Source: Octopus bimaculoides | Taxonomy: Eukaryota | Length of the DNA: 64,000 nucleotides | NCBI RefSeq assembly: GCF_001194135.2 | Contig: NC_068990.1 | Location: 88,650,286 to 88,714,285 of the forward strand | Direction of reading: 5' to 3' | Shown: positions 28,730 to 62,423 of the stretch, in pieces | Layout: each line of letters begins with the position of its first letter | Numbering within the stretch: the stretch's first letter is position 1 | Translations under genes and position numbers: made by a program | Notes under the pieces: model-generated | Seen by the model: only the letters and a program-made list of their open reading frames with translations | The model's database searches: none | What the model was told of the DNA's origin: nothing

Positions 28730-30304
28730 GGAAACTCACAGCTTATTTTGCTGGGTATGATGGAAAGTGTCAGCTGTCCACAGCCAGCAGACTAAGGTGA
28801 CACTTGTTTACTGGTCATGCTTCAAGAACCCTGCAAGGAATTCTTGCAGTTCCAAGCAATGCTGATTTTTGTAGGTGATCCTCCTTCACACTTGCACCAG
28901 TCTTTTTCAGCCATGTTGGTAGCTGAGTGCTGATATTTCCAAATGCACCAATTACTATTGGCATCACGTCTACTCTCTTCATTGACCACAGCCTTCGTAT
29001 TTCTCACTTTGAATCATCATAAGTGTTTATTTTGTCATCAAATTAGCCTGAAGATGTTTTACATTCACATGAATTTTAAGTTGTCATTTTGTAGATCAAT
29101 TATTTGTTTATAATGCAGGTATGCCAAACCCATGCCAGCATGGAAAAATGAACGTTCAATAATGATGATGATGAGGAGGCTCACATTCATCATTGTCATC
29201 ATTATTGTCATCATCACCATCATCATCGTTGTCGTCATTGTCATCATTTAAAACAAATTATGCAACAGATGCTATAAAATATTTAATGTGTGTGTGAATA
29301 TAAAATATTTTTCTTGTTTTCTTTCATTTCTTCTTTATCTAGCCGATGATGATCTTTTAACATTAAAAAAAATTGCCATACCAGGGCATGATTCACCTGA
29401 TCGGATTAAAGGAATCAGTTTAAAGGAGTGTGATCGTGCTTGTCTTCAAATTCCAGGATGTAAATCTTATGAGTATCATGAACAAAATAAATCCTGTATT
29501 CCATCTAATGAGACTCACCTGACTTATGACCTTAAACCCAACAAAGATGGATGGGATATACATATCATGAACCCAGGTCAGTGGAGTGTAATTCATTTAT
29601 TTCACGTGTCTGTATGCATGTGTGTGCTAGTTTGTTTGTTTCTACATATACACATATCTAATATGTATATGCTTATAACAAACACGCACACACATATATG
29701 TACATGATTTCAAGGGAATCCTGTAGCTTATAGTCAACAGCTTGTTAGCATCTAGCATAGATATGGCTTGTATATAACACTGAAAGGCAAAAATAATAGA
29801 TCAATAAAATTCATTATTCAATATATCACATTCACTTCATTGTACATCAAAATTGATGGAATAATTTTGTTAAGATGACAAATGTTCCAAATTGAATAGC
29901 TATGTAGATTGCCCAGTATGTGATGAATAAACATAGGAATAGTGAAAAATGGAGAAATACACTCAAGTAAAGCACATATTTCTGAAGCAGAACAATTAAC
30001 ACTATAAGTGTAATTACATCATAAAATAATGATATAATATGCTTCATCTTCAGGTATGACACCACTCAGATCAAATCAAATTCCACGTTGAGTATTGATG
30101 CAAATATAAAGCATGTTGTGAATTAATTTCACTTATGATTTGAATTTTTCTGCTTTGGAAATATGTTGTAGTTAACTGCATTTGTTCATTATTTTTATTG
30201 ATACGGCAATTTGACCAGGGGAGCCCAACAAAGTAAGTAATAAGTTTAAAAATGGGTTCTGGGTTCAGTTTGTTACATGTGTGTGTGTGTGTATGAGCAT
30301 ATGT

Positions 30305-42600: not shown

Positions 42601-42896
42601 CTTTTGCATCGAAGGTCGGCGATTGTCGTACGCTGAAGAAGGGAAATAAACCTGAAACTCGAGTACGTACGTATCGTAGATCAAGATGGGAAGGATAACC
42701 TCCCTTGGCAAATACAGCCAGGACACAGAAGTGTGTCGATAGCCAGCTGGAGGAGATGTCCTCCTGGGGCTAAAAGCAACAGTAACATCCACCCCTCGGG
42801 GTCAGCCAGATTTAAGTGGCAAATATACTTCACTTTATCGTGCAGTTACNNNNNNNNNNNNNNNNNNNNNNNNNNNNNNNNNNNNNNNNNNNNNNN

Positions 42897-42956
<60 letters not shown>

Positions 42957-45900
42957 TTATGAAAAGTTTAGAATGTAAGAAACAGGATGAAAGAAATTGA
43001 AGAAATTTATACACCCATACATAGATATGGGTATATACCTACATATGTATATATGTTTATGCACATATGAATGCAAATATGTCTATGTGCATAGACATCT
43101 CTCTCTCTCTCTCTTTGTATATATATATATATATATATATATGCATACATACACACACACACGCACACATACACACACACACACACTCACACACACACTC
43201 ACACACATATGTGTGTGTATATATATATATATATAATGATGATGATGTGTGTTTGTGTGTGTTAGTATGCAAGTATTGATCCATCGGGGCTCATTTCTTA
43301 CTCCCTTTTCTCTTTTTGCTTTACTCATCTGTATGTTTGTATATATGCATTTATATCTGCAGGCAGATTTCTTCATATTGATCCACTCAATGTCTTTTAT
43401 TGTAACATAGCCATTTTCTTCCCTTTGTAACTCACTCCCAAACATACATACAAGCACCATTTCTATCAATTGCTTTTAACAATTCCAGATCACAGCATAA
43501 TTAACTGTGGGCTTCCTAAAGACATTGTTGGTGCTAAGAAGTTCTACAGAACCGACTACTATAAATCTGAAGTGTCTTATATTTGTTCAAATCAAGAAGT
43601 AATAAAGTCAACATGTGAAAAGAACAGCAAATGGACTCCAGTCCCATCTACTTGTAAAGGTAACATAAATAGGTTCCTACTTGTCTTTGTTTATGTAATT
43701 TTGTTTTATCTGTATGTTAATGTCATTGTCAGAGAAAGAAAGGCTAATTCCATGACAATTTCCATGATGTTTGTGGTTGGTGGGAAGGAGAAAGAACATT
43801 ATCCTGTAACCAGAGACCTCTCCAAATGCTTGCAACACAGTAGGCTTCATTAATACTACACAAAGGACAGGGATGCTATTAAATTGGGCAATGGATTGTC
43901 TGCCAGCCAAGAGCTGGAGGTGTTGAAACTTGTTTCCAGTAGGCTTATTAATAGTTTTCATCCACAAAGCTTAATTGTGAAAAAAATTTTTTAACTCAGA
44001 CAAAACTTTACCCAATACCACATTGTTGTTACAATTATACTATATCTCATCTGATAGTTTTTCTTAATTTGTAATGTCTTGATAGTTTTTCTGTGAATTT
44101 GTAACTCCTTGATATATTTTCTCTTAATTTCTGCTAAACCTTTTAAACTTTCTAAACTTTAGAAATTTTTGAACCTTTGAAATTTGAAAATTTCAAAAGA
44201 AATCTTTCAGGGTTTTCTCAAGTGAGGATTTCCAAAGACCTCCTCACTGTTCATATAAATATTTATACTAATACCTCTGTTTCTCATCATCTTTTCGTTT
44301 TCATTTTAATTTCATTTTCTAATTTTTAATTTGTTCTTTTTCTTTAAGATAGTTTTTTAATATTTTTTTCTCATTTCATTTTTCATTCTTCATTTTTCAA
44401 TTTCTCAATTTGTCAGTTCTCCACGGTATTCTCTTCATTGCTCTATTCTACCATCTTTCACCCCTATCCTTTGGTTTCCCCATCAATAAACCACTAAGTA
44501 TCACCTCCTTCTTCTACCTGTTCATTTTTTTCTTCCTAGCTCAGCTTTACTTCTCTTAGTATAGCACCCCCCACCTCTCACAATCCTACTATGGCATCAC
44601 CCTGTCACATCGCTCTGTACTGGATGTTAACTTTGTCCTTCCTGAGCTGATAAAATATTAATATAATACTAGTCAAGTTTAGAAGCCAATTTCATTGACC
44701 AATTCTAACCCCAAATATTTGGCCTACTTTCTGTTAGAAACTAATGTCATTGTTATTGCTATTGTTGCTATTTTTCATTGGCCTAAATTTTATTTTAACT
44801 CTAGATTCTGAAACCCATTTTGTGAAAGTAAAAGATGCACTTCTAGATGTACCCAGGAAAATATTGATGGGCGAGAAAAGTGTAACAGCAGATGCCTGTG
44901 CAAAACAATGTTTGTCTGATGAAAATTGTTTATCATTTGAAATAAATAAAGATAGAAAATGTTACCTATCAAAGCAAACTGCAGCTACATCTAAGAAAAT
45001 AAAAACTAGCAAAAACAGAGATTACTACCAACGAATACAATGTAATTATTTTTTGTGTTTTATTATTGTATTCTTTTTTCCTATTTTTCTGAAATTTGAT
45101 TCCTTTTGTACCTCATAATATATAGAAAACTATTTCTGTCAAAACATTGACAAGTTTATCTATAAGGACAGTTATAGACATGTTCCTGAAAAAGTAGATA
45201 AGCAATGTTAGGAAGTTTAAATACTGTTAAGATATTTTCATACTGCATTTACTCATCTAAAACAACTTTATGCATGCATTCAATTGTATTTATATGTAAG
45301 AAAGGAAATTCATGTTGTTTTTCTTAAACTTGAGTAGTTGTAGTTGTAGTAGTAGTAGTAGGAGGAGGAGGAGCAGTAGTAGTAGCAGCAGCAGCAACAG
45401 CATTTTCTTCATTTCTTCATGGCTTAAACAGTGCTATTACAACACAGTGTCTCATCAGTAATTGTTGTCCTTCATAATCTGCCATACAAAATAACAGAAA
45501 AAGTACTACTAATTTATATAGTTATGTATTTCCAACATTTTGTCATGGTTATTAGAGCAAGATGCCCTTCCTATCACCAACCATATCAGAAGAGAAAGTT
45601 ATCACAGAGTAAGGGCAATACTCAAGACAGATCTGAATGCAAGAAACAGAATCGAAGACATCAATACTTTAGCCATACCAGTCCTCACTTACAGTTTCAA
45701 TATCATTAACTGGTCAGTTACTGAAATATGTAATATTGACAGAAAAATACAAAAATTGTTGACAGCATCACCCTAAGGCAGATACATTCTGATTAGGTTG
45801 CCATTTTGTGGATTAGTTATTTGTTTATAATAAATTGTCCAATTACAAAGTTATGCACCACATTCTTTACAAATGTGTGTATGCGATTGGGTGAATGGAT

Positions 45901-47892: not shown

Positions 47893-50800
47893 ATAGGTTT
47901 TGCCATCTATACAACTCTAAATGTTTGACCACCATAACATAATGCAACAAAGCGTTCCCCTTATGATCCTTTGTGATTAAGCATCTAGTTGCATGTGGAA
48001 CATCCAATTTGTGGTTTCCAAACAACCACAACAGTTAAGTGTACAAGGGGAACAAATGATATAAACTTGTATTTCGTCTGTGTTGCTCTATATACCATAA
48101 CCAGTATTACTACTAAGCACAGTAGAAACCACACCACTATACTGGATATAAATTGGATGAAGATAATCTACATAGAGCTCTAAACTCAACAGTAGCAGTT
48201 GTACATCTAACTGTACACACAAGATATACTCTGTGTGTGTGTGTGTGTGTATACATGCAAATGTCTTCAGTTTGTTTCAGTCAATATCTTTTATTCTAAA
48301 TTTCTCATTATCTCCTTGTTCTCACCCTCCTCCTAACATATTCACAACTGATATCCGTTTCTCTTATCACTTCCAGTTCATGCAAAAGTTACCTGTGGAC
48401 GACCAAAAAATGTTGCTGGTGCATCTAAATCCTATGATACTACTACCTATAAATCTGAAGTGAACTATACTTGTCAAGATGGAGAAAAATTAAAGGCAGT
48501 GTGCCAAAAGGACAAGAAATGGACTCCAGAAGTGTCTTGTAAAGGTAATGTAAATATGTTTTCTCATTTGGACTCTATCTTTGTTTTAGTTTTGTGTTAA
48601 ATGTCAATGTTAGAGAAATTCTGGCAGATCTCCTCAAATTCTTCCATCAAAGAACAGAAAGTGTGTAAGTGTGTTCCCTCCAGCAGGATGTTTCCTGGTT
48701 CAAATCCCTCTTGGCTATAATTCACCTCTCATATTTCTGTAGTTGATAAAACCAGCTCTATTCAATTATTGAGTTCCATTCCTTTCATGAGTCATTGCAG
48801 AATGTGTGAATTTATGTTTAAGTTAGAAACTGTTATCATGAATATTGGTAACATCAACGATAATTATAAATATTTGTGTTAGTGATGGATTGAGAGAATC
48901 ATCAGAGCATCAGACAAAATGTGTTGTGGTACTTGTTCTGGCTCTAACTTCTGAGTTCAGATCTGGCTGATGTCAAATTTGCTTTGTCAGGGCCAATAAA
49001 ATATAATACCAGTCAAATATAGGGACCAATTTAACTGATTAACTATTACTTTTGTCATTCTTTCTACATTATAAATTAGAATTATTGTTGCTGTTGTTTC
49101 TATTCCTATAAATTTTTCTTTACTTCCAGTTACTCAGAAATATTTTGTGAAAGCAAGAAATGGAACTTTGGATGTACCTGAGAAATTGTTGTGGGATAAG
49201 AAAAATGTTACAGTAGAAGACTGTGCAGCAAAATGCTTTTCTCAAAACAATTGCTTATCATTTGAAATATATAAAGAAAATAAATGTTACTTATCAAAGA
49301 AGACTGCAGCTACTTCCAAGAAAATAAAATCAGCCAAAGACAAAGATTACTACCAACGAGTAAAACGTAATTATTCTTTGTCCCTCTTTTTCTGAAATGT
49401 GTGACTCTATTTGTACCTCATAATATATAGATCTATATAATCAAGCTAGATAGCATTCAAAGCAACTTGACAAGAGATTTTGTTAAAAACTTTGAAGCAG
49501 TTATGAAATGTAATGCAACAGCTATGCTTGTGGTGAGATTGGCCCTTGAATAATTCTTCAGTTTAAAGCACAAAGGCTTGATTGTCTCAGCTAAGGCAAA
49601 TGCTTTAAGGCACAAGAGAAGAAAAGCCATTGCTGGACTCTTGTGACAGGGGTACGACATGGCAACAAAGCAAGAATTCAGTCTTTGGAATGCCATGATG
49701 GCCGCTTGTTATTAGATCAGCAGTATTTTGCTCATGAGTGGCAAGTTGGGTCACCGAATGGATTTCAGTGCCCACCCCAAAAGCCTCCTATGAGGCACTG
49801 CAAGAAAAGTGCTGTGTTTTTAAAACAATAGGGATCACATTGATAATTTTTGCCTATAACTCCTCTGAATGCAAATTTCAAGATTTAACCCAACATGTTA
49901 GTCAAATTTTGGCACTTGCCCAACAGTTGGATTGGTGATGTGCAAACATGCACCATTACAAACATATCTATCCATGATGCCCTCCATTTCATGTGGTACA
50001 TCATAGAAACAATGGACAATAAAGCTTGTATGGATAGGGCCCTGACCAATTTAGATGAATCAAAAGCTTTTAAAAAGGTTAACAAATAATACCTGATTAT
50101 TGTCCTCAAAACAGTGAGTTTCAGTTCCAGTTTTGAAAGTTGGATTACCATAATGTACAACAATACTTGCTGCTTCATGGTTAGAGTGAATGGCCACTAA
50201 TAGGAACTATTCAGCATCACTCAGTATGTCAAGTTTGTTCTAGGCAGGACCATACTATTCAACAGAGCTGGCTTGTTTCCTTGGACCATGCACGCCGCTC
50301 TTACCCACTTTTCAATAAATTTTCTGAGCAACAGCACTTACCTCTCCACTTTCAACAGGCATTGTTTTAGTCTGTTTTAGGTTGTAGACAGTACATTTGT
50401 ACTCCCTTCTTCTGATGGTGTGCTTTTGTGTAAGATTAAATGACCATAAGGGTACTTCACATGCTGGTTGACCATCTTTTGAATTATGTTAAGATTATAC
50501 AAAAGCACACCATTAGATAGGAAGGTACCAGTGGATTACATGCAACTTAAATTTTGAAACAAGGTTACAAATGAGCCTGAAGATAGTCTACATTCACATA
50601 AATTCTAAATTGTAATTTTGTGGATTAACTATTTGTTTATAATACAGGTATGTCCAAACCATGCTTGCATGGAAAATGAGCATTAAATGATTTCTATGAT
50701 GATGACGAAGATGATCATTTAAAACAAATTATGCAACAGATGCTATATAGTATTTAATATGTGTGTGTGAATATAAAATGTCTTTCTTGTTTTCTTTCAT

Positions 50801-51150
50801 TTCTTTTTTATCTAGCCGATGATGATGTTTTTACACTTAAAAGAACTACCATACCATTTCACGATACATTTGGTCAACTTGAAGGAATCAGTTTAAAGGA
50901 ATGTGATCATGCTTGCCTTCAAATTCCAGGATGTAAATCTTATGAGTATCATGAAAAAAAAGAATTCTGTAAACCATCTAACGAGACTCACCTGACTTAT
51001 GACCTTAAACCCAACAAAGATGGATGGGACATACATATCATGAACCCAGGTCAGTGGAGTGTATTCATTAAATTTTATGTGTGTCTGCATGCATCTACAT
51101 CAGGTTGTGTGCATCTACATATGCACATATGTATTATATGTATGTTTATA

Positions 51151-51218
<68 letters not shown>

Positions 51219-54200
51219 ATGTACATTAGTTCAATAGCTTATTAGCATCTAGCATACATATGGCTTGTATAGAACGCTCAATGCAAAAATAACAGAAGTC
51301 TGCATTTTTAAATGAAGTAAATGATGATTGCCTACTTCTAGGGGATTCTGAACCCTTTTTTAATGCTGATTTCAAATATGTTTTTAGTTTTTTTTCTCGA
51401 TCACATACACACATTTTACACAAATGGCTGCCAAAGTTATGATCATAAATAACAAACTCATCAGACAGACATGTTAACAGAAATAGAAAGTCCTATCATA
51501 CGTAATTTATTTATATTCATATACACTCACACGTAAACACTCAATTATTTGACATGTAAATATAAACATTATATACCTACAATAAAACACAAATGTATAC
51601 AAACACACACACACATTATATACAAGTACATGCATACATATGTACAAACAAGTATATTTGTATGTATTTATCTATTTAGATCTGAATGCAAATTTCTTCT
51701 GTCTGATTCATGCAATAATTTTTATTGTAATATTGCCATTTTCTCCTCACTCTCATCCTCCTAAGATCCACATACCATTCATATCGGTTTCTCTTTTCAA
51801 TTCCAGCTGTCTCAAATATTAGCTGTGAACCTCCAAAAGATATTGCTCACACATCGAAGTCCTACAATTCCACCATCTATAGATCTGAGGTGACCTATAC
51901 TTGTCCAGGGGGAGAAAAGTTCAAGTCAACTTGTGGAAAGGACAAAAAATGGACTCCAATGATATCTCTTTGTAAAGGTAACATAAACAGCTCCTTTTTT
52001 GTTGTCTCTAAATAATTTTGTTTACTTTCTATAATGAATGTCTTTGTCAGAGGAAGACTGGTTGACTCCATATTAATTGTCTGTGTTTGTGGTTGGTATG
52101 TGGAAAACATTTCCACAAATTATGCAACAAAGTGAACTCTATTGATTCTACCCAAGGGCCAAGTACTGCTATTAAATTGGGTGATGGGCTAAGTTTGCCA
52201 AACAAAAGCTGAAAGTGTAGAAACTTGTCACAAACAAGCTTGCACAACCAGATTTCAGATTTCCAGCAACCAGATTTCATGCACAAAGCTTAGATGTGAA
52301 GCAAATCCTTAACCACAGACAAAACTACATTGCTGTTAGGTAAACTTCTTACCTCTGTAGCTATTCCTTGGCAAATCTTGATAATTTTTCTCTTAATTTC
52401 TAACTTTTTCAGCCATACTTTATATCATCATCCCAAACTTTTTACAATATAATTCCATGAGTCCTTATTTCGTAAAACTCGGCAGCCCTCTGAAACAGAC
52501 TTCTGAGACTCTTGTTATCTTCTAATTCATACCCTTTAATTATATTATTAATGATAATGTTTCCTGATTTATACACAAAGGTAAGTTTTGATGAGAGTTG
52601 TTTAGTCAATACCATCAGCCTTATAATTTGATATATACATTATGTCATTGACCTCCAACAAGTATGAAAGGCAAAGTGAACTCTGGCTTCATTTGAACTG
52701 ATATCCAAAAGGCCCGAAATACACAATTTAAAGCTTTTTTTCCAATTCTCTCATTACTATACGTTGATAATGATGTTGAAGATGTTGAGGCAAAATTCTT
52801 GAGTGTAGATGGATGTCGGTCTAAGGCTAATTGAAGAACCCCCATCATTGAATGTTAGGCTCATCTCTCAGGACAAATGGAGCATGTTAAGCAATTATTG
52901 GGATGGAACTCCCAGGACGAATGTTTGCTCCAATTTTTGTAACCTAAACTACAGGTTTATGCACTGTGGTCCCTATCCAGTCTTCCTTACCATATTTATC
53001 TGTTTTACAAGTGATACTTTAAAAATGCATATGAGTGATTAACCAAACTGTGTCATTAGATATTTTAACTTCATCCACCATACAACCATTTTGCTATAAC
53101 TATTAGATAAGAAAAACTGCCTTTTCTTCACTGTTAAAGGAGGGTGAGCAGCAATTATCATGGTATCAACCCATCCTCCCTCAAAGATTTGGGCTTCTTT
53201 CTATATCAGAAATTAATATTATTATTCTTTTTAAGGTGTTGAGCTGGCAGAATCATTAGCACACTCACCAAAATTCTTAGTGGCATTTCGTTTGTCCTTA
53301 GGTTCTGAGTTCAAATTCAGCCTTTGCCTTTCATCCTTTCGGGATCAATAAAATAAGTACCAGTTGAACACTGGGGATCTATGTAATCAACTTACCTCAC
53401 TTCCGAACTTGCTGGCCTTGTGCCAAAATTTGAAACCAAAATTAATATTCTTGTTGTATTTCATTGGTCTAAATTTTATTCTATATCTAGATTTTAAGAA
53501 TCAATTTGTGAAAGTAAACCATTCATCTCTTAATGTACCGGAGAAAATATTGTGGAAAAAGAAAAAGGTTACAGCAGAAGCCTGTGCAAAAAAATGTTTC
53601 TCTGATAAAAAGTGTTTATCATTTGAAATAAACAAAAGAATTGGAAAATGCTTCTTATCAAAGAAAACTGCAGCTACCTCCAACAATTTAAAGACAGACA
53701 AAAACAGAGATTACTACCAACGAATAAAATGTAATTATTCTTTGTATTTTATTACTGGAACTAGCTGGTCCCGTGCCGTCAAAAATGACAGCTAATTGTA
53801 CTATTTTATATAGAAATAAGGTATATAATAAACACTTGTACAAAAATTCACATTCTTCCCTTCTACATGCACACACATGTACACATATACTCACACAGCG
53901 CTGAAATGTTATTTGATTTTTCTTTTCAGCATTGAATTCATTTTCATTTTATCTAGTTTCAGCTCATGAGCTGTGGCCATGCTGAATGTTCACTCTCATA
54001 TACAAACATTCCCATTTTGCCATCACTCCTTCCTTCTTTATTCATTTATCACCCCTTCCTTCCTTTCTCATTCATATGTTGTGATGGAGAAAAACACAAG
54101 ATTACAAGAGTATTATTATATCACCATCTCATTTCCATTGCACACACACACTCACACAGACATTCACATACTTCCCTTTTTACATACACACACATATACT

Positions 54201-54561
54201 CACACAGAGTTGAAATTCTGTTTGATTTTTTTCACCCCTTCCTTCCTTATTCATCTATCACCTCTTCTTTTCTCACTCATATGTTGTGATGAAGAAAGAC
54301 TCAAGAGTATTATTATAGTAGGTTCTCTTTTCCATTATTTCTGAAATTTGTGATTCCATTTGTACTTCATAATATATAGATAACTATTTCTGTAAAAACA
54401 TTTGTCTACCTCTAAGGGCAAGCATAGACACATTTTACACAAGCAATTTTAGGAACTGTAGATACTGTTAGAGCATTCTCACAAAGCATTTGTTCACCTG
54501 GAACATTTATGTATATTTTCAGTGATTGTTTTATGTAAGAAAAGAATTTCTTTTTTTTTCT

Positions 54562-54595
<34 letters not shown>

Positions 54596-55434
54596 GGTTG
54601 TGGCACTGGTGCTGGTGCTTGTTGTGGTAGTGGGTGAAGCAGAAGTAGTTGTGATAACAACAGCTTTTACTACATTTGTGTATGTTGGCATGGCTTAGAC
54701 ATTGCTATTGCTGCACCATATCTCGGCATTAGGTGTTGTCCTTCATTATCTGATATGCAGACTAACCGAAGTAATGCCAGTTTATGTAATTGTGTAACTC
54801 CTATATTTTGTCATGGTTGTTATAGCAAAATGTACTTTTTATTGCCAACCATTTATACAACATAAAGTGAATTAGAGAAGTTGTCTGCTGAGACTAAAGA
54901 AACTTCTCTGCCTAAAATAAGTTACTATTTTCAGAACAGTCTCAGAGTATTAAGAACTGACCAACTAGCAAATTCACTCAGTTTTACTGCAAGGATTTGG
55001 TCCTTTACAGTTGAAATCCTTCTTTCTTGAAACCTTGTACTAGGTTTAGTGATCACAGTATTAGAATACTCATGAATGCTAGGATGACATTGTTAATGCG
55101 ATGAATTCTTCTGGATCAAAAAGAAAAGTGAGCCATTCCTCTGTATATCTACAAGAAACTTTCATCAGAATTAAATAGCAAACTTAACTGCAATATTTAT
55201 CCTGGGTAGCCTCAAGAAGTTTGAGTACTTTCACAGATCAGCTTTATACAGAGACAGTAACCTAGAAATTTCAAGTAATATGCACTATGATACCATGAAA
55301 AGGTTTAGAACTCAACATGGAAAATTTCACCTTCCTCTCCTGTTTTATGTAAAGACTTAAGAATCTGCCCAGCCTAACCTCAAACTAACTCACCAAGCCT
55401 ACTCCCAAGACAAGACAAAGAGAGGGAGGGAGAG

Positions 55435-55484
<50 letters not shown>

Positions 55485-58400
55485 CGTGTATCCTAAATTT
55501 GATTTGATTCAGTGTTATACATGTATATTAAATAGCTTATGTAGTTTTTTTAACGAATATACATTGTCATTATGTTTGAGAAATTTACTATGATTAAGAG
55601 AACTGCAAAAGCCAATGTTTGTGTGTGTGTGTGTCCCCATCTGTTTTGAGTGTGGGCATAAAATTTACTCTTTGTTTTCTTTTTTCTTTCTAGCCAAAGA
55701 TAAGAAAATTAAGCTTCATAAAGTTAGCATATCTGAGCAAGATATTTTAGGACAGCTTCAGAATGTGAACTTAAAGAAGTGTAATGAAGCTTGCCATCAA
55801 CATCCAGAATGTAATTCATATCAGTACAATGAGAAAGAAATGATCTGTGATTTGAGTAATGGGACTCATTTGACTGATAAACTTAAACTCAATGATGGAA
55901 ATGGGGATACTTACATCTTTGATAAAGGTCAGTAGAGTATTTTCATTTTATTTTTATGTGCATGCTTATGTGTGTCTTACATATTAAAATTGAAAATGTC
56001 TCTGTGTGTGTATCAGTATGTCCTCGTTTTGCACCAAAATGGTTTGACCAGTTTTTCTTAAACTTCACATGCACATTGCTTATGCGTCTGGGGAGGTTTT
56101 AAGTATAAGTTGATTTCGAAAAATGTTCGGGTAAACGGCAGGAGGTATAACATTTGGGCGTGAGTGAACACTGGGAGTAATTATTTTTTAGCTTCCAAGG
56201 GAAATAACCCATCCCCTCCTGGAAATAACCACCAAGGGAAATAACCCATTCATTTTCAGTATTCTTATTTCTTAGTATTTGAACTATTTTAGTTATTTTT
56301 CTTAATTTATCCAATACAACGCTTAAACAAGTAAATAGTATTCTCCTAAACAATAGATCCACTTATTTCAGTTAGTGACTTATTCACGAATATACCAACA
56401 CTAGCGCTGCTGAGGGTAATATTCTCTGGGAACGCACAAAAGCTTTTTTTCACAATTAATTACTTTGAATTGTTATTATCTCATGTCTAATTAGCCTGTT
56501 ATTACATAACATGTTTCACAATTTTAGTATACATACCTTATTAGTATTGCCTCCTAAAATCTATATACTCTCAGAATGTATCAAAGCCCTTTTCGGAGCT
56601 ACTTTATCTGAATTTTTATTATAGGGTAATTAATTTCATGTTATTACATAACTGACTTCACAATTTGGGTATTCATAACTTATTGAGAATTCCTAAAAAC
56701 AAATACTTTGTAAGACAGTTTGGTATTCTCAATAAATACACAAAAACCGTTTTAAGGGCTACATACTTTGTATTGTTGTTACTGGATTAGCGAAACAAGT
56801 ATGAGAATGGAACCAAGGGATAAGCTTGCTTTCCCAGGAATTACCAGGTATGTCAACTACTGTATATATATATATATATATATGCTTATTATAGCCTCAG
56901 GTTGACCAAAACTTTCTGAGTGGATTTCGTACTTGGAAACTGAAAGAATAAATGTCGTATATATGTGTGTGCGTGTCTTGTGTTTGTACCCCCACCATTG
57001 CTTGACAACTGATGCTGCTGCGTTTATATTCCCATAACTTAGCGGTTTGGTAAAAGACCCTGACAGAGTGAGTACTAGGCTTACAAAGAATAAATCCCGT
57101 GGTTGATTTTTCCGACTAATGGCGATGCTCCAGCATGGCCGCAGTCACATGACTGAAACAAGTAAAACAATAAAAATCTAGGAACTGCTATCATAAATAT
57201 TGGTAACATCAACAATAATTATAAATATTTTTAACCCATGCCAGCATGGACAGTGGACATTAAATGATGATGATGCTGAGTAGTGATGGATTGAGAGAAT
57301 CATCAGAACATCAGACAAAATGTGTTGTGGTATATATTGTGGCTCTTTGACTTCTGAGTTCAGATCTGGCTGATGTCAAATTTGCTTTGTCAGGGCCAAT
57401 AAAATAAAATCCCAGTCAAATATAGGGACCAATTTAACCAGTTAACTCTTACCTTAAACTTTTGTCCTTCTTTCTACATTATAAATTAAATTATTGTTGT
57501 TGTTTCTCTTCATATTAATTTTTTAATTTTTTTATTCCAGTTGCTAAGAAATATTTTGTGAAAGTAAAAAATGGAACACTGGATGTACCTGAGAAATTGT
57601 TGTGGCATAGGAAAAATATAACAGCAGAAGACTGTGCCAAAAAATGCTTTTCTGAAAAAAATTGTTTATCGTTTGAAATAAATAAAGAAAATAGAAAATG
57701 TTACTTATCAAAGGAAACTGCAGCTGCCTCCAAGAAAATAAAATCAGCCAAAGACAGAGATTACTACCAACGAGTAAAACGTAATTACTCTTTATGTTCC
57801 TCTTTTTCTGAAATTTGTGATTCCATTTGTACTTCATAGTATATAGACAACCATTTGTGTAAAGACATTGACAGGTTTATCTATAAGGACAGATATGGAC
57901 GTAGTCCTCGGAAAGAAAAGCAATATTAGGAAATGTGGTTCTGTTAAGACATTCTCAAACAGAATTTGTTCACTTTAAACACTTTTATGCATGATTGAAG
58001 TTGCTTTTCATGTGCTGGTGGCTGTAAGAAAGGAAGCTCTTATGTTTCTTAAATCTGAGTAGTAGTGGTGGTAGAAATCACTTCAAATTTTGGTACAAGG
58101 CCAGCAGTTTTGAGGGGACAGTATTAGTTCATACTGCTGACCCCCAGTTCTTGATAGATTTCATAATTCATCAAAATCAGAAGGATGAAAAATAGTTTTT
58201 CTTGGCAGAGTTTGAACTTGAAATGTAATGAGATGGAAGACATACTGCTAGGTAGCATGGCTTTTGCACAGTATCTTGCTATTTGTTCCTCTCCTCCGTA
58301 ATCTGATACACAAAATAACAGAAGAAAATGATTATTTCCCTAGCTTACTCATATGTTATGTACAAGCTTTACAAAAGAATTATTATTTCAAATACTTCTA

Positions 58401-61400
58401 TTATGTTATATATTTAAAACTTTAGATAATATAAGTACCTTATAATTGAAATTTTTATTTTAAATATTTGAAACTCATCTGGTTCATTATTTTCTAAATG
58501 GACAATTTATTATAAAAATAGAATCCATCGATCAAACTATTTTTTGACATGAGATATCCTTCTCAAAATTAATGTGAATTCTAGTACATCATGAGACACA
58601 CATGGAACCTTGCCTCACTGTTTTAGGCTGTAGATAATACATTTGTACACCCCTCTTCTGATGGTGTGCTTTTGTTTAAGATTAAATTACCATAAGGACA
58701 CTTCACATGCTGGTTGTCCATCTTTTGAACTATGTTTAGATTCAACAAAAGCACACCATTAGAAAAGGAAAGCACAAATGGATTACAGGCAACTTAAATT
58801 TTGAAACAATGTTTGAAATGAGCCTGAAGATGTTTTACATTCACATGAATTCTGACTAAGTTGTCATTTTGTAGATCAATTATTTGTTTATAATGCAGGC
58901 ATGTGCAACCCATACTTGCATGGATAATGAATGTTCAATGATGATGGTGATGATGATGATAATCATCATCATTTAAAACAAATAATGCACTAAATGCTAT
59001 ATAATATTTAATATGCATGTGTGACTATAAAATGTCTTTTTTGTTTTCTTTCATTTCTTTTTTATCTAGCCGATGATGATGTCTTTACATTAAAAAGAAC
59101 TGCCATACCAGGGCATGATTCACCTGATCGGATTAAAGAAATCAGTTTAAAGGAGTGTGATCGTGCTTGTCTTCAAATTCCAGGATGTAAATCTTATGAG
59201 TACCATGAAAAATATAGTTACTGTGATCCAAGTAATAAGACTCACCTGACTCATGACCTTAAACCCAACGAAGATGGATGGGATATACACCTCATGAACC
59301 CAGGTCAGTGGAGTGTATTCAATGACAGCAATTTTTTCTTTTTCTCTCTTTGTTCCTTCTCTTTCTGACTTTTCCCCTTTGTTTTTATATATTGTAATGA
59401 TGACAGCATTACACTATATACGTATATACATACATGTATATTTGTGTGCATGTATTTATATCTGAATGTAATTTTTTTCTATTTGATTCACTCAATACTT
59501 TTTCTTGTAATATTACCATTTCCTCATTCTCGTTCTCCTCCTAAGATTCACATACCATTCATATCAGTTTCTTTTACCATTTCCAGTTTACTCAAATATT
59601 AACTGTGGACCTCCAAAAGATATTGCTCGTGGATCGACTTTCTTCAATTCCACCATTTATAGATCTGAGGTGACCTATAGATGCCAAAATGGAGAAAAAC
59701 TAAAGTCAGTGTGTACAAAGGACAATAAGTGGACTTCAATAACATCTATTTGTAAAGGTAACATAAATAGCTTCTCTTTGTTGTCTCTGTCTAAGTAATT
59801 TTGTTTACTTTTGTAATAAATATCTTTGTCAGAGGAAGACTGGTTGACTCCATATTAATTTTCTAAGTGTCTGTGGTTGGTATGTGGAAGACATTTCCAC
59901 AAATTATGCAACAGAGTGAACTCCATTAATTCTACCCAAGGGGTAGATAATGATATTAAATTGGTAGATGGGTTAAGTCTGCCAAACAAAAGCTGAAAGT
60001 GTAGAAACTTGTCACAAACAAGCTTGCACAACCAGATTTCAGATTTCCAGCAACCAGATTTCATGCACAAAGCTGAGTTGTGAAGCAAATCCTTAACCAC
60101 AGACAAAACTACATTGTTGTTAGGTAAACTTCTTACCTCTGTAGCTATTCCTTGGCAAATCTTGATAGTTTTTCTCTTAATTTCTAACTTTTGCAGCCAT
60201 CCCAAACTTTTTACAATATACTTCCATGAGTCCTTATTTTGTAAAACTCAGCAGCCCTTTAAAACAGACTTCTTGTTATTTTCCACTTCATACCCTTTAA
60301 TTACATTATTAATAATAATGTTTCCTGATTTATACACAAAGGTAAGTTTTGATGAGAGTTGTTTAGTCAATACCATCAGCCTTATAATTTGATATATACA
60401 TTATGTCATTGACCTCCAACAAGTATGAAAGGCAAAGTGAACTCTGGCTTCATTTGAACTGATATCCAAAAGACCCGAAATACACAATTTAAAGCTTTTC
60501 TTCCAATTCTCTCATTACTATACATTGATAATGATGTTGAAGATGTTGAGGCAAAATTCTTGAATGTAGATGGATGTCGGTCTAGGGCTAATTGAAGAAC
60601 CCCCATCATGTCTTTCTCATGGGCAGTAACTGACTATGTAAAGTGGACTAATTTAGACTGAGAATCAAACGCAGATCATTGGCGCACACCACTCAGCACA
60701 TATTTATACTAAAAGAACAACTAGGGGATAAATACCCATGGTCACTTCCTGCATAGAAAACAAATAGTAAAGTAGCTAATTTTTGAAGCAGCAAGGCACC
60801 AGACATCTCTATTTATATTTATTCACTAGATGAGATGAGAGAAAAATTATTTTTGTTGTCTCAGGTCAAACATTGCAAAAGAATAAAGTCATTGGCTATA
60901 ATCTTTCTCATGACTGGCCATATTTAGTTACATTCTTTTACATTCTGGGTTCAAATCCCACCTGATGAACACTAATCAAGTAGTGAGATCAATCTAGTCA
61001 TATGTATTCTCACCACAGACAGAGTGGCCTTGCGTTTAAGTTCATAACCATTCATTAATATCAGTGACATCAATAATAATTATAATAATTCTTGTCATTA
61101 AAGATGATAGATTGATGGAATCATTAGAGCATCAGAGAAAATGTGCTGTGGTATTTGTTCTGGCTCTTTAATGCCTGATTTCAAATTCTGCTGATGTTAA
61201 ATACAATGCCAATCAAGTGTAGGTGGACAATTTAATCAACCCTCTCCTACCACAAAGATTTAGGCTTCTTGCTATAATAGCAAATAATATTATTATTCTT
61301 GTATTTCATTGATTGAAATTTTATTTTAAATCTAGATGTTAAGAGCGAATTTGTGAAAGTAAATGATGCATTTCTTGATGTACCTGAGAAAAAACTGTGG

Positions 61401-62423
61401 AAGAAGAAAAATGTAACAACAGATGAATGTGCTGAAAAATGTTTGTCCAATGAAAATTGTTTATCATTTGAAATAACCAAAGGAAGTGGAAAATGCTTCT
61501 TATCAGAGAAAACTGCAGATCACACCAAGAAAATAAAAGCTGACAAAAGCAAAGATTACTACCAACGGATAAAATGTAATTATTGTTTGCATTTTATCAC
61601 TGGAATTCTCTTTTCTATTATTTCTGAAATTTGTGATTCCATTTGTACTTCATAATATATAAACAACCATTTCTGTTAAGACATTGACAAATTTACCTAT
61701 AAAGACAGGCATAGACACATTCCTTGTATAAGCAATTTTAGGAACTGTAAATATTTTTAGGACATTCTCAAAAAGTTCCAAGACTACTGGTGTTTAATAA
61801 AAAATAACTTATTTTCCTAAGTTTTAATATCATCTGCTTTGAAATGGTCACCTTACGCAGCAGTACACCAGTTCCAGTTTTCCTGCCACCTTTGGAATCC
61901 AGCCTGGAAGTCATTTTCCACAAGCAAGATGAGCACCTTCCATGATTTGCTGTTGATCAGTGTTAAAACGGTGACCTTTATCTTATATACCTGTAACCTT
62001 AGGTATCTACTAACTTTCAATAGTCTTTCAAGTGTTGGGAGTTTTTGATATCACCTCATATAACAGTTATACCATTTCAAAATTACGTGATGCATGCATT
62101 ATAATGTGTAGAGTGTGTGTGTATGTGTGCATCTGTTTTGAGTGTGGGTATAAAATGTACTTATTGTTTTCTCTTCTTTTTCCTTCCAGCTGATGATACA
62201 AAAATTAAGCTTCATAAAGTTAGCATACCTGAGCAGGATGTTTTAAGACAACTTAAGAATGTGAACTTAGAGAAGTGTAATGAAGCTTGCCTTCAACATT
62301 CAGAATGTAATTCATATGAGTACAATAAGAAAGAAAAGGTCTGTGATTTGAGTAATGTGACTCATTTGACTGATAAACTTAAACCCAGTGATGGAAATAG
62401 GGATGTTTACATCATTGATCCAG
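789..62423 (+). CDS. Partial multi-exon gene: giant (PAN/Apple-PAN/Apple-Sushi/CCP)n extracellular protein; 36 exons seen, both ends outside the window
   Basis: 36 AG...GT-bounded exons with lengths divisible by 3, all phase 1-1 and stop-free. PAN cores are C-x3-C-x5-C-x11-C with S-[FY] after the third Cys. CCP cores are C-x25-C-x9-C-x5-W-x5/6-C. Exon lengths sum to about 7,728 nt if C3 is 171 nt. Confidence 0.88.
2307..2540 (+). CDS. Exon B1, PAN/Apple type B-alpha (234 nt)
   Basis: atctag|CC GAT ... AAC CCA G|gtcagt; [31 protein letters not shown]. Confidence 0.9.
2977..3233 (+). mobile_element. tRNA-derived SINE with target-site duplication
   Basis: A-box TGGCTTAGTGG, B-box GTTTCGATTCC, T-rich end; flanking ATACCTTATATCA (2961-2973) and ATACCTTATGTCA (3234-3246). 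Confidence 0.85.
3299..3745 (-). mobile_element. piggyBac-like transposase N-terminal fragment
   Basis: Acidic/Ser-rich N-terminus then [20 protein letters not shown]...W.P....EMRAF, the usual start of piggyBac/PGBD-type transposases; truncated. Confidence 0.72.
4246..4416 (+). CDS. Exon C1, Sushi/CCP (171 nt; not in the ORF track)
   Basis: ttccag|CT AAT ... TGT GAA G|gtaatg; [52 protein letters not shown]. Confidence 0.88.
5290..5546 (-). mobile_element. RTE-like LINE 3' RT fragment
   Basis: [43 protein letters not shown] resembles the RTE C-terminal LYG.ETW...RLE..E..MLRW motif; partial copy also near 32140-32220. Confidence 0.65.
5926..6096 (+). CDS. Exon C2, Sushi/CCP (171 nt)
   Basis: tttcag|CT TTT ... 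TGT AAC G|gtaaca; [52 protein letters not shown]. Confidence 0.88.
6761..8127 (+). mobile_element. Full-length but defective Tc1-like DNA transposon with DD36E spacing (Incomer-like)
   Basis: TA|CAGGGG..GGACAAAATAATGGAA left TIR and TTCCATTATTTTGTCCAACCCCTG|TA right TIR. Transposase pieces [15 protein letters not shown] and QDDNAP...SPDLNIIE, with 36 residues between D and E. Stops, frameshifts and a ~100-nt insertion. Confidence 0.92.
9096..9335 (+). CDS. Exon A2, PAN type A (240 nt)
   Basis: ttgtag|AT GCT CAG ... GTA AAT T|gtaatt; [28 protein letters not shown]. Confidence 0.9.
11414..11647 (+). CDS. Exon B2, PAN type B-beta (234 nt)
   Basis: tttcag|TT GAT GGA ... AAC CCA G|gtcagt; [31 protein letters not shown]. 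Confidence 0.9.
11744..12055 (+). mobile_element. (ATG)n-tailed retroposon 3' end (RTE-related LINE 3'UTR or partner SINE)
   Basis: TAGAAACCATGCCAAATCAGA...CCAACCCATG...GTTAAAT(GAT)n; related copies at 24221-24600 (-), about 33480-33680 (-), 46925-47125 (+) and about 57230-57280 (+). Confidence 0.7.
13225..13334 (+). CDS. Exon C3, Sushi/CCP; 3' part lost in assembly gap (expected end about 13395)
   Basis: ttccag|TT GTT ACA; [32 protein letters not shown] then Ns; 109/110 nt identical to the start of C8. Confidence 0.8.
13335..13717. other. Assembly gap; further gaps at 23139-23806, 33167-33480, 42850-42896 and 46346-46720
   Basis: Runs of N, mostly abutting microsatellites. Confidence 0.99.
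14560..15220 (-). mobile_element. Highly decayed CR1/L2-type LINE RT relic downstream of CCP exons
   Basis: Minus-strand translation has remnants such as [10 protein letters not shown]...GGVLQ and LYQ...CGTYP; homologous copies at about 26440-27230, 34130-34350 and 52800-53100. Confidence 0.45.
15622..15861 (+). CDS. Exon A3, PAN type A (240 nt)
   Basis: ttccag|TT TCT AAG ... GTA GAA C|gtaact; [28 protein letters not shown]. Confidence 0.9.
17638..17871 (+). CDS. Exon B3, PAN type B-alpha (234 nt)
   Basis: atctag|CT GAT ... AAT CCA G|gtcagt; [31 protein letters not shown]. Confidence 0.9.
17955..19240 (+). mobile_element. Degenerate Penelope-like element (RT C-terminal half plus GIY-YIG endonuclease)
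   Basis: GLYRDDAL..., [10 protein letters not shown]...RPYLKPN..YIN...[14 protein letters not shown]...[12 protein letters not shown], then [16 protein letters not shown]...[11 protein letters not shown]. Confidence 0.8.
19643..19813 (+). CDS. Exon C4, Sushi/CCP (171 nt)
   Basis: tttcag|CT TAT ... TGT AAA G|gtaaca; [52 protein letters not shown]. Confidence 0.88.
20941..21180 (+). CDS. Exon A4, PAN type A (240 nt), acidic variant
   Basis: ctttag|AT CCT CAG ... GTA ACA C|gtaatt; [28 protein letters not shown]. Confidence 0.9.
21975..22160 (+). mobile_element. tRNA-related SINE (same family as the relics in front of A exons)
   Basis: GAGC.TGCAGAATCATTAGC...GTTCTGAGTTCAAATTCC...AATAAAATAAGTACCAGTT; better-preserved copy at 53235-53445. 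Confidence 0.75.
22757..22990 (+). CDS. Exon B4, PAN type B-beta (234 nt)
   Basis: ttccag|CT GAT ... AAC CCA G|gtcagt; [31 protein letters not shown]. Confidence 0.9.
23948..24020 (-). pseudogene. tRNA-Thr(TGT)-like sequence, degenerate
   Basis: Minus strand GGGCAGTTTAGTTTAATGGTAAAACACTTGACGTGTAATCACAGAGATGTGAGTTCGAGTCTCATGGCTGGCC. D stem GTTT/AAAC and T arm GTGAG-TTCGAGT-CTCAT are intact; the anticodon stem is imperfect; TTTT follows about 10 nt downstream. Confidence 0.6.
25568..25735 (+). CDS. Exon C5, Sushi/CCP (168 nt)
   Basis: ttacag|TT GTC ... TGT AAA G|gtaata; [51 protein letters not shown]. Confidence 0.88.
28129..28368 (+). CDS. Exon A5, PAN type A (240 nt)
   Basis: ttctag|TT ACT AAG ... 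GTA GAT T|gtaatt; [28 protein letters not shown]. Confidence 0.9.
29343..29576 (+). CDS. Exon B5, PAN type B-alpha (234 nt)
   Basis: atctag|CC GAT ... AAC CCA G|gtcagt; [31 protein letters not shown]. Confidence 0.9.
30732..30902 (+). CDS. Exon C6, Sushi/CCP (171 nt) with an extra Cys
   Basis: ttctag|CT AAT ... TGT AAA A|gtaatg; [52 protein letters not shown]. Confidence 0.85.
32583..32753 (+). CDS. Exon C7, Sushi/CCP (171 nt)
   Basis: tttcag|CT TAT ... TGT AAT G|gtaaca; [52 protein letters not shown]. Confidence 0.88.
35764..36003 (+). CDS. Exon A6, PAN type A (240 nt)
   Basis: ctctag|AT GCT CAG ... GTA AAC T|gtaatt; [28 protein letters not shown]. Confidence 0.9.
36060..36510 (-). mobile_element. 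R4/Dong-like LINE RT fragment
   Basis: [17 protein letters not shown] (cf. AWIDYKKAYD..PHSW) and [11 protein letters not shown]. Confidence 0.62.
36721..36954 (+). CDS. Exon B6, PAN type B-beta (234 nt)
   Basis: tttcag|TC GAT GAA ... AAC CCA G|gtcagt; [31 protein letters not shown]. Confidence 0.9.
37235..37455 (+). mobile_element. RTE (BovB-like) LINE RT 3' fragment
   Basis: [39 protein letters not shown]...KRRLRWL. Confidence 0.75.
38253..38423 (+). CDS. Exon C8, Sushi/CCP (171 nt)
   Basis: ttccag|TT GTT ... TGT AAA G|gtaatg; [52 protein letters not shown]. Confidence 0.88.
39081..39320 (+). CDS. Exon A7, PAN type A (240 nt)
   Basis: ttccag|TT TCT AAG ... GTA AAT C|gtaatt; [28 protein letters not shown]. 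Confidence 0.9.
39580..39810 (-). mobile_element. RTE-like LINE 3' end fragment
   Basis: Minus strand [24 protein letters not shown] followed by 3'UTR-like sequence related to 24420-24600. Confidence 0.6.
39900..40745 (-). mobile_element. R4/Dong-like LINE RT fragment
   Basis: [63 protein letters not shown]. Confidence 0.78.
41323..41556 (+). CDS. Exon B7, PAN type B-alpha (234 nt)
   Basis: ttccag|CT GAA GAT ... AAC CCA G|gtcagt; [31 protein letters not shown]. Confidence 0.9.
42391..42838. mobile_element. Non-autonomous foldback/MITE-like element with ~118-bp TIRs, set in (TA)n
   Basis: 42391-42507 is the reverse complement of 42719-42838, with a few mismatches and one 3-nt indel; GC/CpG-rich relative to flanks; no coding potential. 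Confidence 0.8.
43489..43659 (+). CDS. Exon C9, Sushi/CCP (171 nt)
   Basis: ttccag|AT CAC ... TGT AAA G|gtaaca; [52 protein letters not shown]. Confidence 0.88.
44805..45041 (+). CDS. Exon A8, PAN type A (237 nt, one-codon deletion)
   Basis: ctctag|AT TCT GAA ... ATA CAA T|gtaatt; [27 protein letters not shown]. Confidence 0.9.
45540..45780 (+). mobile_element. R4/Dong-like LINE RT C-terminal fragment
   Basis: [55 protein letters not shown]. Confidence 0.72.
45940..46173 (+). CDS. Exon B8, PAN type B-beta (234 nt)
   Basis: ttctag|CT GAT ... AAT CCA G|gtcagt; [31 protein letters not shown]. Confidence 0.9.
46775..46920 (-). mobile_element. tRNA-derived SINE 5' part, antisense
   Basis: Plus strand ...CCAGAACCATGTGGTTGGGAAGCAAACTTCTTACCACACAGC, the reverse complement of a tRNA-like head. 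Confidence 0.6.
48377..48544 (+). CDS. Exon C10, Sushi/CCP (168 nt)
   Basis: ttccag|TT CAT ... TGT AAA G|gtaatg; [51 protein letters not shown]. Confidence 0.88.
49130..49366 (+). CDS. Exon A9, PAN type A (237 nt, one-codon deletion)
   Basis: ttccag|TT ACT CAG ... GTA AAA C|gtaatt; [27 protein letters not shown]. Confidence 0.9.
49560..50230 (+). mobile_element. L1/Tx1-like LINE RT fragment
   Basis: [21 protein letters not shown]...[14 protein letters not shown]...VRVNGH (cf. LDQ.KAFDRV.H..L..VL...GF...F..WI..LY...V.VNG). Confidence 0.6.
50816..51049 (+). CDS. Exon B9, PAN type B-alpha (234 nt)
   Basis: atctag|CC GAT ... AAC CCA G|gtcagt; [31 protein letters not shown]. Confidence 0.9.
51152..51216. 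repeat. (CA)n microsatellite, representative of many (TA)n, (TG)n, (ATG)n, (TTA)n, (TAG)n and (TGGA)n tracts
   Basis: Read directly; other examples 12055-12085, 13718-13780, 20430-20455, 28680-28728, 36615-36655, 54565-54595, 55440-55480. Confidence 0.97.
51807..51977 (+). CDS. Exon C11, Sushi/CCP (171 nt)
   Basis: ttccag|CT GTC ... TGT AAA G|gtaaca; [52 protein letters not shown]. Confidence 0.88.
53235..53445 (+). mobile_element. tRNA-related SINE ending about 45 nt before the A10 acceptor
   Basis: GAGCTGGCAGAATCATTAGC...GTTCTGAGTTCAAATTC...TTTGCCTTTCATCCTTTCGGG...AAGTACCAGTT...GGCCTTGTGCCAAAATTTGAAACC. Confidence 0.8.
53491..53730 (+). CDS. Exon A10, PAN type A (240 nt)
   Basis: atctag|AT TTT AAG ... 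ATA AAA T|gtaatt; [28 protein letters not shown]. Confidence 0.9.
55694..55927 (+). CDS. Exon B10, PAN type B-beta (234 nt)
   Basis: ttctag|CC AAA GAT ... GAT AAA G|gtcagt; [31 protein letters not shown]. Confidence 0.88.
56025..56430 (+). mobile_element. Possible Helitron/Helentron-associated non-autonomous element (DINE-1/HINE-like)
   Basis: GTATGTCCTCG...GACCAGTTTTTCTTAAACTTCACATGCACATTGCTTATG after a (TG)n run; resemblance from memory only. Confidence 0.35.
56890..57175 (+). mobile_element. 3' half of an abundant SINE
   Basis: GGAAACTGAAAGAA...CGTATATATG..., TAACTTAGCGGTT.GG.AAAAGA, GCTCCAGCATGGCCGCAGTCA.ATGACTGAAACAAGTAAAA. Confidence 0.65.
57541..57780 (+). CDS. Exon A11, PAN type A (240 nt)
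   Basis: ttccag|TT GCT AAG ... GTA AAA C|gtaatt; [28 protein letters not shown]. Confidence 0.9.
59070..59303 (+). CDS. Exon B11, PAN type B-alpha (234 nt)
   Basis: atctag|CC GAT ... AAC CCA G|gtcagt; [31 protein letters not shown]. Confidence 0.9.
59587..59757 (+). CDS. Exon C12, Sushi/CCP (171 nt)
   Basis: ttccag|TT TAC ... TGT AAA G|gtaaca; [52 protein letters not shown]. Confidence 0.88.
61336..61575 (+). CDS. Exon A12, PAN type A (240 nt)
   Basis: atctag|AT GTT AAG ... ATA AAA T|gtaatt; [28 protein letters not shown]. Confidence 0.9.
62190..62423 (+). CDS. Exon B12, PAN type B-beta (234 nt)
   Basis: ttccag|CT GAT ... GAT CCA G|gtcagc; [31 protein letters not shown]. Confidence 0.88.

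Follow-up and report, generated by a model that had tools for sequence, protein, structure and literature searches.

Background

In the vertebrate regulators of complement activation (RCA) cluster, arrays of exons encoding CCP domains evolve in concert, as in complement receptor 1 (CR1) with its long homologous repeats, and do so by gene conversion as well as unequal crossing-over. Snake-venom genes offer a second point of reference, for there accelerated evolution is recognised by a ratio of replacement to synonymous divergence (KA/KS) above 1, at 1.5-1.7, combined with a very small intron divergence (KN) of 0.049-0.065 (PMC6609765). Both systems bear on a 64,000-nucleotide stretch of the Octopus bimaculoides genome (assembly GCF_001194135.2, contig NC_068990.1, positions 88,650,286 to 88,714,285 of the forward strand; hereafter the window), which carries part of a single very large octopus gene, an array of tandemly duplicated phase 1-1 exons. 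Two of its CCP (Sushi) exons, C11 at 51807..51977 and C12 at 59587..59757, are about 80% identical beside an intron block that is 98% identical, a combination which the initial annotation read as exons outrunning introns in the manner of venom PLA2 and conotoxin genes, and attributed either to diversifying selection on the domain surface or to conversion restricted to the intron. We find that the pairing of an 80% exon with a 98% intron most likely reflects a mosaic of two ages rather than a fast exon; its best explanation, to which we assign a probability of roughly 0.7, is that ectopic gene conversion has overwritten a patch of intron within a tandem array of PAN-PAN-CCP exons. Positions throughout are those of the window, on its plus strand unless stated otherwise.

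The locus resembles crotaline venom PLA2 in its tandemly duplicated genes or exons and its small, disulfide-rich secreted domains, and a substitution ratio near 1 is also known from some PLA2 pairs. Crotaline introns, however, are near-identical as a whole and are accompanied by KA/KS above 1, whereas the introns adjoining C11 and C12 have reached a divergence (K) of 0.22, KA/KS is 0.84 and near-identity is limited to one internal intron patch. Three marks of the venom type are missing: the flanks are not more conserved, KA/KS is not significantly greater than 1 and the pattern does not recur across exon pairs. With the RCA cluster and CR1 the locus shares phase 1-1 CCP exons duplicated together with their introns as multi-exon blocks, as well as a patchy identity that is independent of coding status, although the vertebrate arrays are pure CCP and the modules of this cephalopod are PAN-PAN-CCP. 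What it does display are the hallmarks of a conversion tract, namely a contiguous and significant stretch of high identity that drops to baseline at either side, has borders bearing no relation to the exon and is diverged in other copies.

Identity across the C11 and C12 units

C11 and C12 are the central exons of two neighbouring five-exon blocks, the first at 49130..55927 (PAN_A 49130-49366, PAN_B 50816-51049, C11, PAN_A 53491-53730, PAN_B 55694-55927) and the second at 57541..62423 (PAN_A 57541-57780, PAN_B 59070-59303, C12, PAN_A 61336-61575, PAN_B 62190-62423). Both are phase 1-1 exons of 171 nt with AG/GT borders, an in-frame translation and a Pfam Sushi match, and C12, alone of the two, is also included in a deposited protein of 279 amino acids (P0002; UniParc UPI0006955489). 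That protein is identical to the splice 59070 (part) - 59587 - 61336 - 62190, and the splice junctions around C12 are confirmed because it matches the predicted splice exactly. Compared block against block, the five exons are 89.9, 83.8, 79.5, 82.1 and 88.5% identical in order, C11/C12 being the lowest, though not by much. The counts on which the initial annotation rested were reproduced in full: C11 and C12 differ at 35 of 171 nt (79.5% identity), with 20 replacements (19 in the 56 full codons and one, Ala/Val, in the split first codon), only four purely synonymous codon changes, and all four Cys and the Trp retained, and the intron block at 52554-52840 differs from 60315-60601 by 5 mismatches in 287 nt, without gaps (98.3%).

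The homologous unit was aligned whole (51634-52848 against 59418-60609), with substitutions counted per segment. Identity is 80.5% in the upstream intron flank of C11 (51634..51806, partner 59418-59586; 136 matches, 33 mismatches and 4 gap columns), with 80 of the proximal 100 nt identical and ungapped, and 82.3% in the 63 nt of intron that directly follow the exon (51978..52040, partner 59758-59822; 51 matches, 11 mismatches). With 79.5% in between, the exon matches in divergence the intron DNA that adjoins it at either end, and the whole of 51634-52040, exon and adjoining introns together, stands at 80.3% (79 mismatches in 402). Identity then climbs through a transition zone (52041..52196, partner 59823-59980) of 89.7%, with 140 matches and 16 mismatches, into a high-identity tract of 96.8% with 20 mismatches in 629 aligned sites, which spans 52197..52848 in the C11 copy and, by alignment, 59981..60609 in the C12 copy, and which includes the block first reported. 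The step in identity thus sits some 60-220 nt inside the downstream intron, away from the splice site.

A one-change-point model fitted by maximum likelihood places the break at 52196 (2-lnL support 52183-52209), with 95 mismatches in 557 positions to its left and 20 in 630 to its right. The likelihood-ratio statistic of 69 was reached in none of 2000 permutations, and the longest mismatch-free run, of 158 nt, in none of 5000. Heterogeneity along the C11/C12 alignment is far beyond chance, and the observation is real and statistically solid. Within the low-identity region left of the break, exon and intron do not differ in their share of mismatches (35/171 vs 60/386, Fisher p = 0.18). The tract itself is uneven (p = 0.004), with 97.6% identity at 52201-52410, 91.7% at 52411-52553, where indels of 15 bp and 8 bp occur, and 98.3% at 52554-52848. 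No assembly gap lies within 5 kb of either the C11 or the C12 copy.

Substitution rates in the exon

Rates were estimated with the NG86 and LWL85 methods and by maximum likelihood, and intron distances are Jukes-Cantor. For C11/C12, NG86 gives 25.8 nonsynonymous differences (Nd) over 132 sites and 8.2 synonymous differences (Sd) over 36 sites, hence a nonsynonymous rate (dN) of 0.227, a synonymous rate (dS) of 0.270 and a ratio (omega) of 0.84, with a bootstrap confidence interval (CI) of 0.36-2.18 and a Fisher test of nonsynonymous against synonymous change at p = 0.82; maximum likelihood gives dN 0.25, dS 0.21 and omega 1.17. The flanking intron has K = 0.220, against 0.047 for the tract and 0.018 for the block first reported. 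Since dN, dS and the distance of the adjacent intron are all about equal, replacement sites are not specifically fast, and the headline of exons outrunning introns gives way to an exon whose divergence is no higher than that of either flanking intron, beside a step that lies within an intron. Diversifying selection on the C11/C12 surface fares no better, with dS (0.21-0.27), dN (0.227-0.25) and flank K (0.22) alike and omega at 0.84. The second of the two original explanations, conversion restricted to the intron, is the one favoured by the identity profile, the rates and the lack of conservation of the tract in other copies. As an outcome speaking against selection, the initial annotation had named a dS as high as dN together with an omega well below 1; the former is what we find, the latter is not, omega being close to 1.

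Omega rises to 1.05 (CI 0.43-2.95) when ten Sushi scaffold codons chosen a priori are left out. Pooled over disjoint young pairs it is 0.77 (0.48-1.30) for CCP, 0.65 (0.44-0.99) for PAN_A and 0.87 (0.59-1.31) for PAN_B exons, and amino-acid constraint is weak in all three exon types. Beyond C11/C12, young CCP pairs have omega values of 0.5-1.0 and exon identities at or above those of their flanks, and none shows the accelerated-exon pattern: the C1/C6 exons are 89.5% identical between flanks of 83.8% and 91.9%, and the C2/C7 exons 93.0% against 92.7% in the upstream flank. For many other pairs the 150-nt flank comparison entered non-homologous sequence (45-68%) and is uninformative there. Seven of the 20 C11/C12 replacements (G8E, G15H/R, K18T, S19F, Y20F, T32R and L39F) fall at positions conserved in at least nine of ten other paralogues, a distribution that relaxed constraint explains no less well than adaptive tuning does. 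Weak constraint, or a mixture of purifying and positive selection, is possible on the CCP surface. As an observation apart, the second PAN_B exons of the two blocks (55694-55927 and 62190-62423) form the pair with the highest pairwise omega, 1.71, and both have lost the Trp conserved in other PAN_B exons, where G-W-D has become GNGD or GNRD.

The tract as ancestral intron

Homologues of 52540-52848 were found at the same relative position in the units of C4 (20477-20690, 72%), C3 (14271-14594, 63%), C6 (31722-31935, 64%), C5 (26365-26503, 67%) and C7 (33091-33165). Because diverged homologues (63-72%) occupy the same place in five units, the tract is ancestral intron, neither an insertion nor a conserved element. 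A recent transposon insertion in both units was rejected on the same grounds and because the minus-strand open reading frame at 59858-60247 has no Pfam match, and a structured RNA or known RNA family was likewise discarded. At E <= 1, Rfam returned no family in the tract, only sub-threshold miRNA-like hits in a CA/TA repeat at 51586-51678, which lies outside it, and the block folds no better than its shuffles on either strand (z +0.5 and +0.7).

Open frames of 90-130 codons with related translations recur on the minus strand of the intron 3' of most CCP exons (59855-60205, 52047-52286, 43680-43970, 38486-38761, 25761-26060 and 19863-20162). The one tested against Pfam, at 59858-60247, had no match. 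These frames are possibly an old repeat belonging to the ancestral unit.

Beyond the tract the two units part company. In the C11 unit the next segment (52849..53160) is homologous to 14592-14876 in the C3 unit and 26630-26822 in the C5 unit, and has no homologue after 60609 in the C12 unit, so that it marks the 3' limit of alignable sequence. In the C12 unit the tract is followed by a segment (60610..60963) homologous to 8159-8331, 27454-27962 and 34827-34982, and without homology to 52849-53440; its counterpart in the C5 unit lies further downstream. The C11 and C12 introns therefore carry reciprocal losses beyond 52848/60609. Alignable sequence resumes 3' of the heterology at 84.8% over 66 nt (53165-53229 vs 61235-61300), and the next PAN_A exon stands at 82.1%.

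Mosaicism elsewhere and clustered changes

Patchy identity is not confined to this pair. C3 and C8 are 98.8% identical (2 differences in 163) between 13172-13334 and 38200-38362, a stretch made up of 52 nt of upstream intron and the first 111 nt of the exon, while their downstream introns are only about 80% identical and upstream homology stops abruptly, so that the C11/C12 pattern is here turned round; since an N gap (13335-13717) terminates the patch, an assembly effect is possible. Among four related PAN_B units (1890-2660, 29025-29710, 50395-51175 and 58640-59335) the closest relative switches along the alignment, the unit at 58.6 kb being closest successively to those at 50.4, 29 and 1.9 kb, which indicates a reticulate history, through conversion, over tens of kilobases. 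Segments of a 27.5-kb duplication range from 77% to 92.5% identity.

The C11/C12 differences were polarised with the nine other complete CCP exons of the window and, as an outgroup only, the CCP of an octopus GON-domain gene described below (L002). Ten changes are derived in C11 and 14 in C12, so that rates are not asymmetric. These changes form only 5 runs against an expectation of 12.7 (permutation p = 0.0007), and the downstream intron shows the same clustering (p = 0.0016 for exon and flanks). The derived runs lie at 59632-59686 in C12 and at 51810-51851 and 51968-52036 in C11, the dense C12 cluster converting a family-conserved KSY to TFF. No donor is found in the window, the derived states being absent from its nine other complete CCP exons as well as from the GON-gene CCP. 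They could have come in by short conversions whose source modules lie beyond the window, or have arisen as multi-nucleotide mutations, and their clustering is contrary to what selection acting independently, site by site, predicts.

Origin of the mosaic

Under our preferred account, two neighbouring five-exon blocks would have been duplicated long ago, and the surroundings of the CCP exon would since have diverged by about 0.2 substitutions per site. In a later step, one unit would have received from the other a copy of 650-800 bp or more of the intron 3' of that exon by ectopic, non-allelic, intragenic gene conversion, resetting the copied stretch to about 97-98% identity and leaving the exon and its immediate flanks at their old divergence; the internal 98/92/98% structure suggests more than one such event. 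In the 5' direction the patch would fade within continuous homology (about 52040-52200), and in the 3' direction it would stop at 52848/60609, where reciprocal deletions leave no pairing partner. We infer both conversion as the mechanism and heterology as the barrier to the tract. A patch is preferred to a single crossover because identity is back at baseline on both sides (80% on the 5' side, 84.8% and 82.1% on the 3' side), and a patch of high identity flanked on both sides by older sequence is what ectopic gene conversion is expected to leave. Several points weigh against this account. C11 and C12 are mutual closest relatives in every segment, so that depth differs along the alignment and topology does not; both copies of the tract rest on one gapped draft assembly, with five N runs in the window, and exact-product look-ups with P0002 and two tract open reading frames found no other contig; the C3/C8 patch cited in support borders on an N gap; and identity in the CCP exon region (80%) is somewhat lower than in the rest of the alignable block sequence (84-90%), so that the intron patch may not be the whole story and some other process may have added to the divergence of the exon region.

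That last point gives some substance to the idea that stretches of C11 and C12 were themselves overwritten by CCP units from outside the window, or altered in multi-nucleotide clusters, a contribution which is compatible with conversion of the intron and which we regard as possible, though decidedly tentative. Besides the low identity of the exon region, the lineage-specific runs and their extension into the downstream intron point in this direction, and unseen donors are plausible in an array that exceeds both ends of the window; set against this, none of the nine other complete CCP exons, nor the GON-gene CCP, holds the derived states, and the clusters could equally stem from selection on contiguous residues. 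Positive selection on the domain surface, making the exon outpace a neutral intron as in crotaline PLA2 or conotoxins, is in our judgement improbable as the cause of the contrast. Omega is high for a structural domain, at 0.84 over all codons and 1.05 outside the scaffold; dN equals the flank K although ten scaffold codons are without replacement; every exon keeps an open frame and its Cys/Trp scaffold, so the gene is not decaying; and a single-unit relative, GON-Abd-1 of Abdopus aculeatus, exists. But dN is equalled by both dS and the distance of the neighbouring intron, leaving no exon-specific excess, and the interval on omega reaches values well below 1, with no Fisher signal. The identity step lies away from the exon border, the derived changes form lineage-specific runs that carry on into the intron, the replacements at paralogue-conserved positions look more like relaxed constraint than the tuning of a variable surface, and the other young CCP pairs, with their unremarkable omega and exon identities equal to or above their flanks, show nothing similar.

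The remaining alternatives concern the tract. A short-read draft assembly might have built part of one intron copy from the reads of the other and so produced a false near-identity. In keeping with this are the five N gaps in the window, the position of the one further patch with more than 97% identity (13172-13334), whose end coincides with a gap, and the abrupt stop of the tract at 60609, from which point the C12 unit continues with another portion of the ancestral intron. We nevertheless think it unlikely, given that the tract copies differ by 20 substitutions and by the 15-bp and 8-bp indels, spread along the tract, that the nearest gap is more than 5 kb from either copy, and that the two segments joined at 60609 succeed one another in that order in the C5 unit too, which is what a simple deletion would leave. 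Purifying selection on a functional non-coding element, such as an enhancer, a splicing element or an antisense or small RNA, might instead have kept the two copies alike; it would account for the 158-nt mismatch-free run and for a 67-codon minus-strand frame (52645-52848 and 60406-60609) open in both copies. This we consider the least probable of all, and very unlikely. The homologous stretch in five other units has diverged to 63-72%, as ordinary intron does, the substitutions of the block within the 67-codon frame are, on our own reading of the translations, mostly replacements (L/F, T/M, K/R and A/V), no Rfam family or folding energy better than that of shuffles was found, and the minus-strand frame at 59858-60247 has no Pfam match.

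The gene and its relatives

The window is AT-rich (GC about 0.33), is interrupted by five N gaps and, compared with itself, resolves into three families of repeated segments along the whole plus strand. Calling exons from open frames with conserved AG/GT borders yields 36 PAN/CCP exons between 789 and 62423, of which 35 are complete and one, C3, is cut by an N gap. PAN_A exons measure 240 or 237 nt, PAN_B exons 234 nt and CCP exons 171 or 168 nt, all of them phase 1-1, and they follow one another in the order A-B-C, occasionally A-B-C-C or A-B, so that the PAN-PAN-CCP module is repeated at least 12 times in the window; the array extends past both of its ends. Joined in sequence, the 35 complete exons form a reading frame of 2518 codons that no stop interrupts. 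Frames, splice sites and the Cys/Trp scaffold are maintained, and exon lengths vary by whole codons only. Pfam PAN_1 (PF00024) matches four stretches of the C11 five-exon block at 110.5 bits, exceeding its gathering score, and Sushi (PF00084) matches all 11 complete CCP exons, C11 scoring 23.2 bits against a cutoff of 20.7. In these exons C6, C32, C42, W48 and C55 are invariant, four Cys and one Trp at the consensus spacing, and a profile built from the 11 finds its best matches in PDB in CR1 (E = 1e-19) and CR2.

The introns also hold the remains of mobile elements, among them a DDE_3 (Tc1/mariner-type) transposase fragment at 7566-8072 on the plus strand (E = 1e-13) and an RVT_1 reverse-transcriptase fragment at 40473-40805 on the minus strand (E = 1e-7). 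An inverted repeat of about 122 nt, 95% identical between its arms (42391-42512 vs 42838-42714), has its right arm stopping 11 nt short of the N gap at 42850-42896, so that the gap is not part of the repeat; a foldback element and a feature of the assembly are both possible readings of it.

The same PAN_A - PAN_B - CCP module occurs in the octopus GON-domain proteins, namely GON-Abd-1 (R4G2C1) and, in O. bimaculoides, XP_014778328.1 (locus L002). Those genes encode, after a signal peptide, a single module, with the GON domain at the C terminus, whereas the gene in the window repeats the module and has no GON domain within the window. The two kinds of module are about 48% identical as protein and about 70% as DNA, intron flanks included. 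The giant array and the GON gene share a module ancestor with its introns in place, since 14093-17313 of L002 is about 70% identical to the array with the intron flanks included. GON-Abd-1 reportedly comes from a study of cDNA from the octopus venom gland (the posterior salivary gland); in the literature on the GON/PAN/Sushi family in cephalopod venom, nothing specific to the gene in the window was found. A related PAN/CCP array lies on a chromosome of O. sinensis (L001), where it is represented by a protein (P0001) that is 54% identical to the C11 block. Its name, 'SVEP1-like', was assigned automatically, and the window shows no sign of vWA, EGF or pentraxin domains. The DNA of L001 and L002 is about 66-80% identical to the units of the window, introns included, and neither is usable as an orthologue because this identity is no better than that between paralogues. 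From their positions, the high-identity pairs internal to L001 appear to be repeats rather than module pairs.

Implications

C11 and C12 are an ordinary instance of a known process, in which patchy gene conversion within a tandem exon array mimics an exon evolving faster than its intron. Such a signature must be tested against both adjoining introns and dS, not against a chosen block, and a genuine test for diversifying selection requires that recombination-aware partitioning be done beforehand.

There is an outside chance that the array encodes a secreted recognition protein, or a salivary (venom-gland) one, in which selection keeps the surfaces of the modules diverse and an omega of about 1 masks surface sites above 1. 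Were that so, intron conversion would be tolerated while conversion homogenising the exon, as between C11 and C12, would be purged by selection, and clustered lineage-specific changes such as KSY to TFF in C12 would represent adaptive shifts of a binding loop. The gene may in any case be of interest to cephalopod biologists for its phase 1-1 PAN/CCP exons, which number 36 or more, its unbroken frame of 2518 codons, its kinship to the one-module GON-domain genes and its omega values of 0.65-0.87 across the three exon types.

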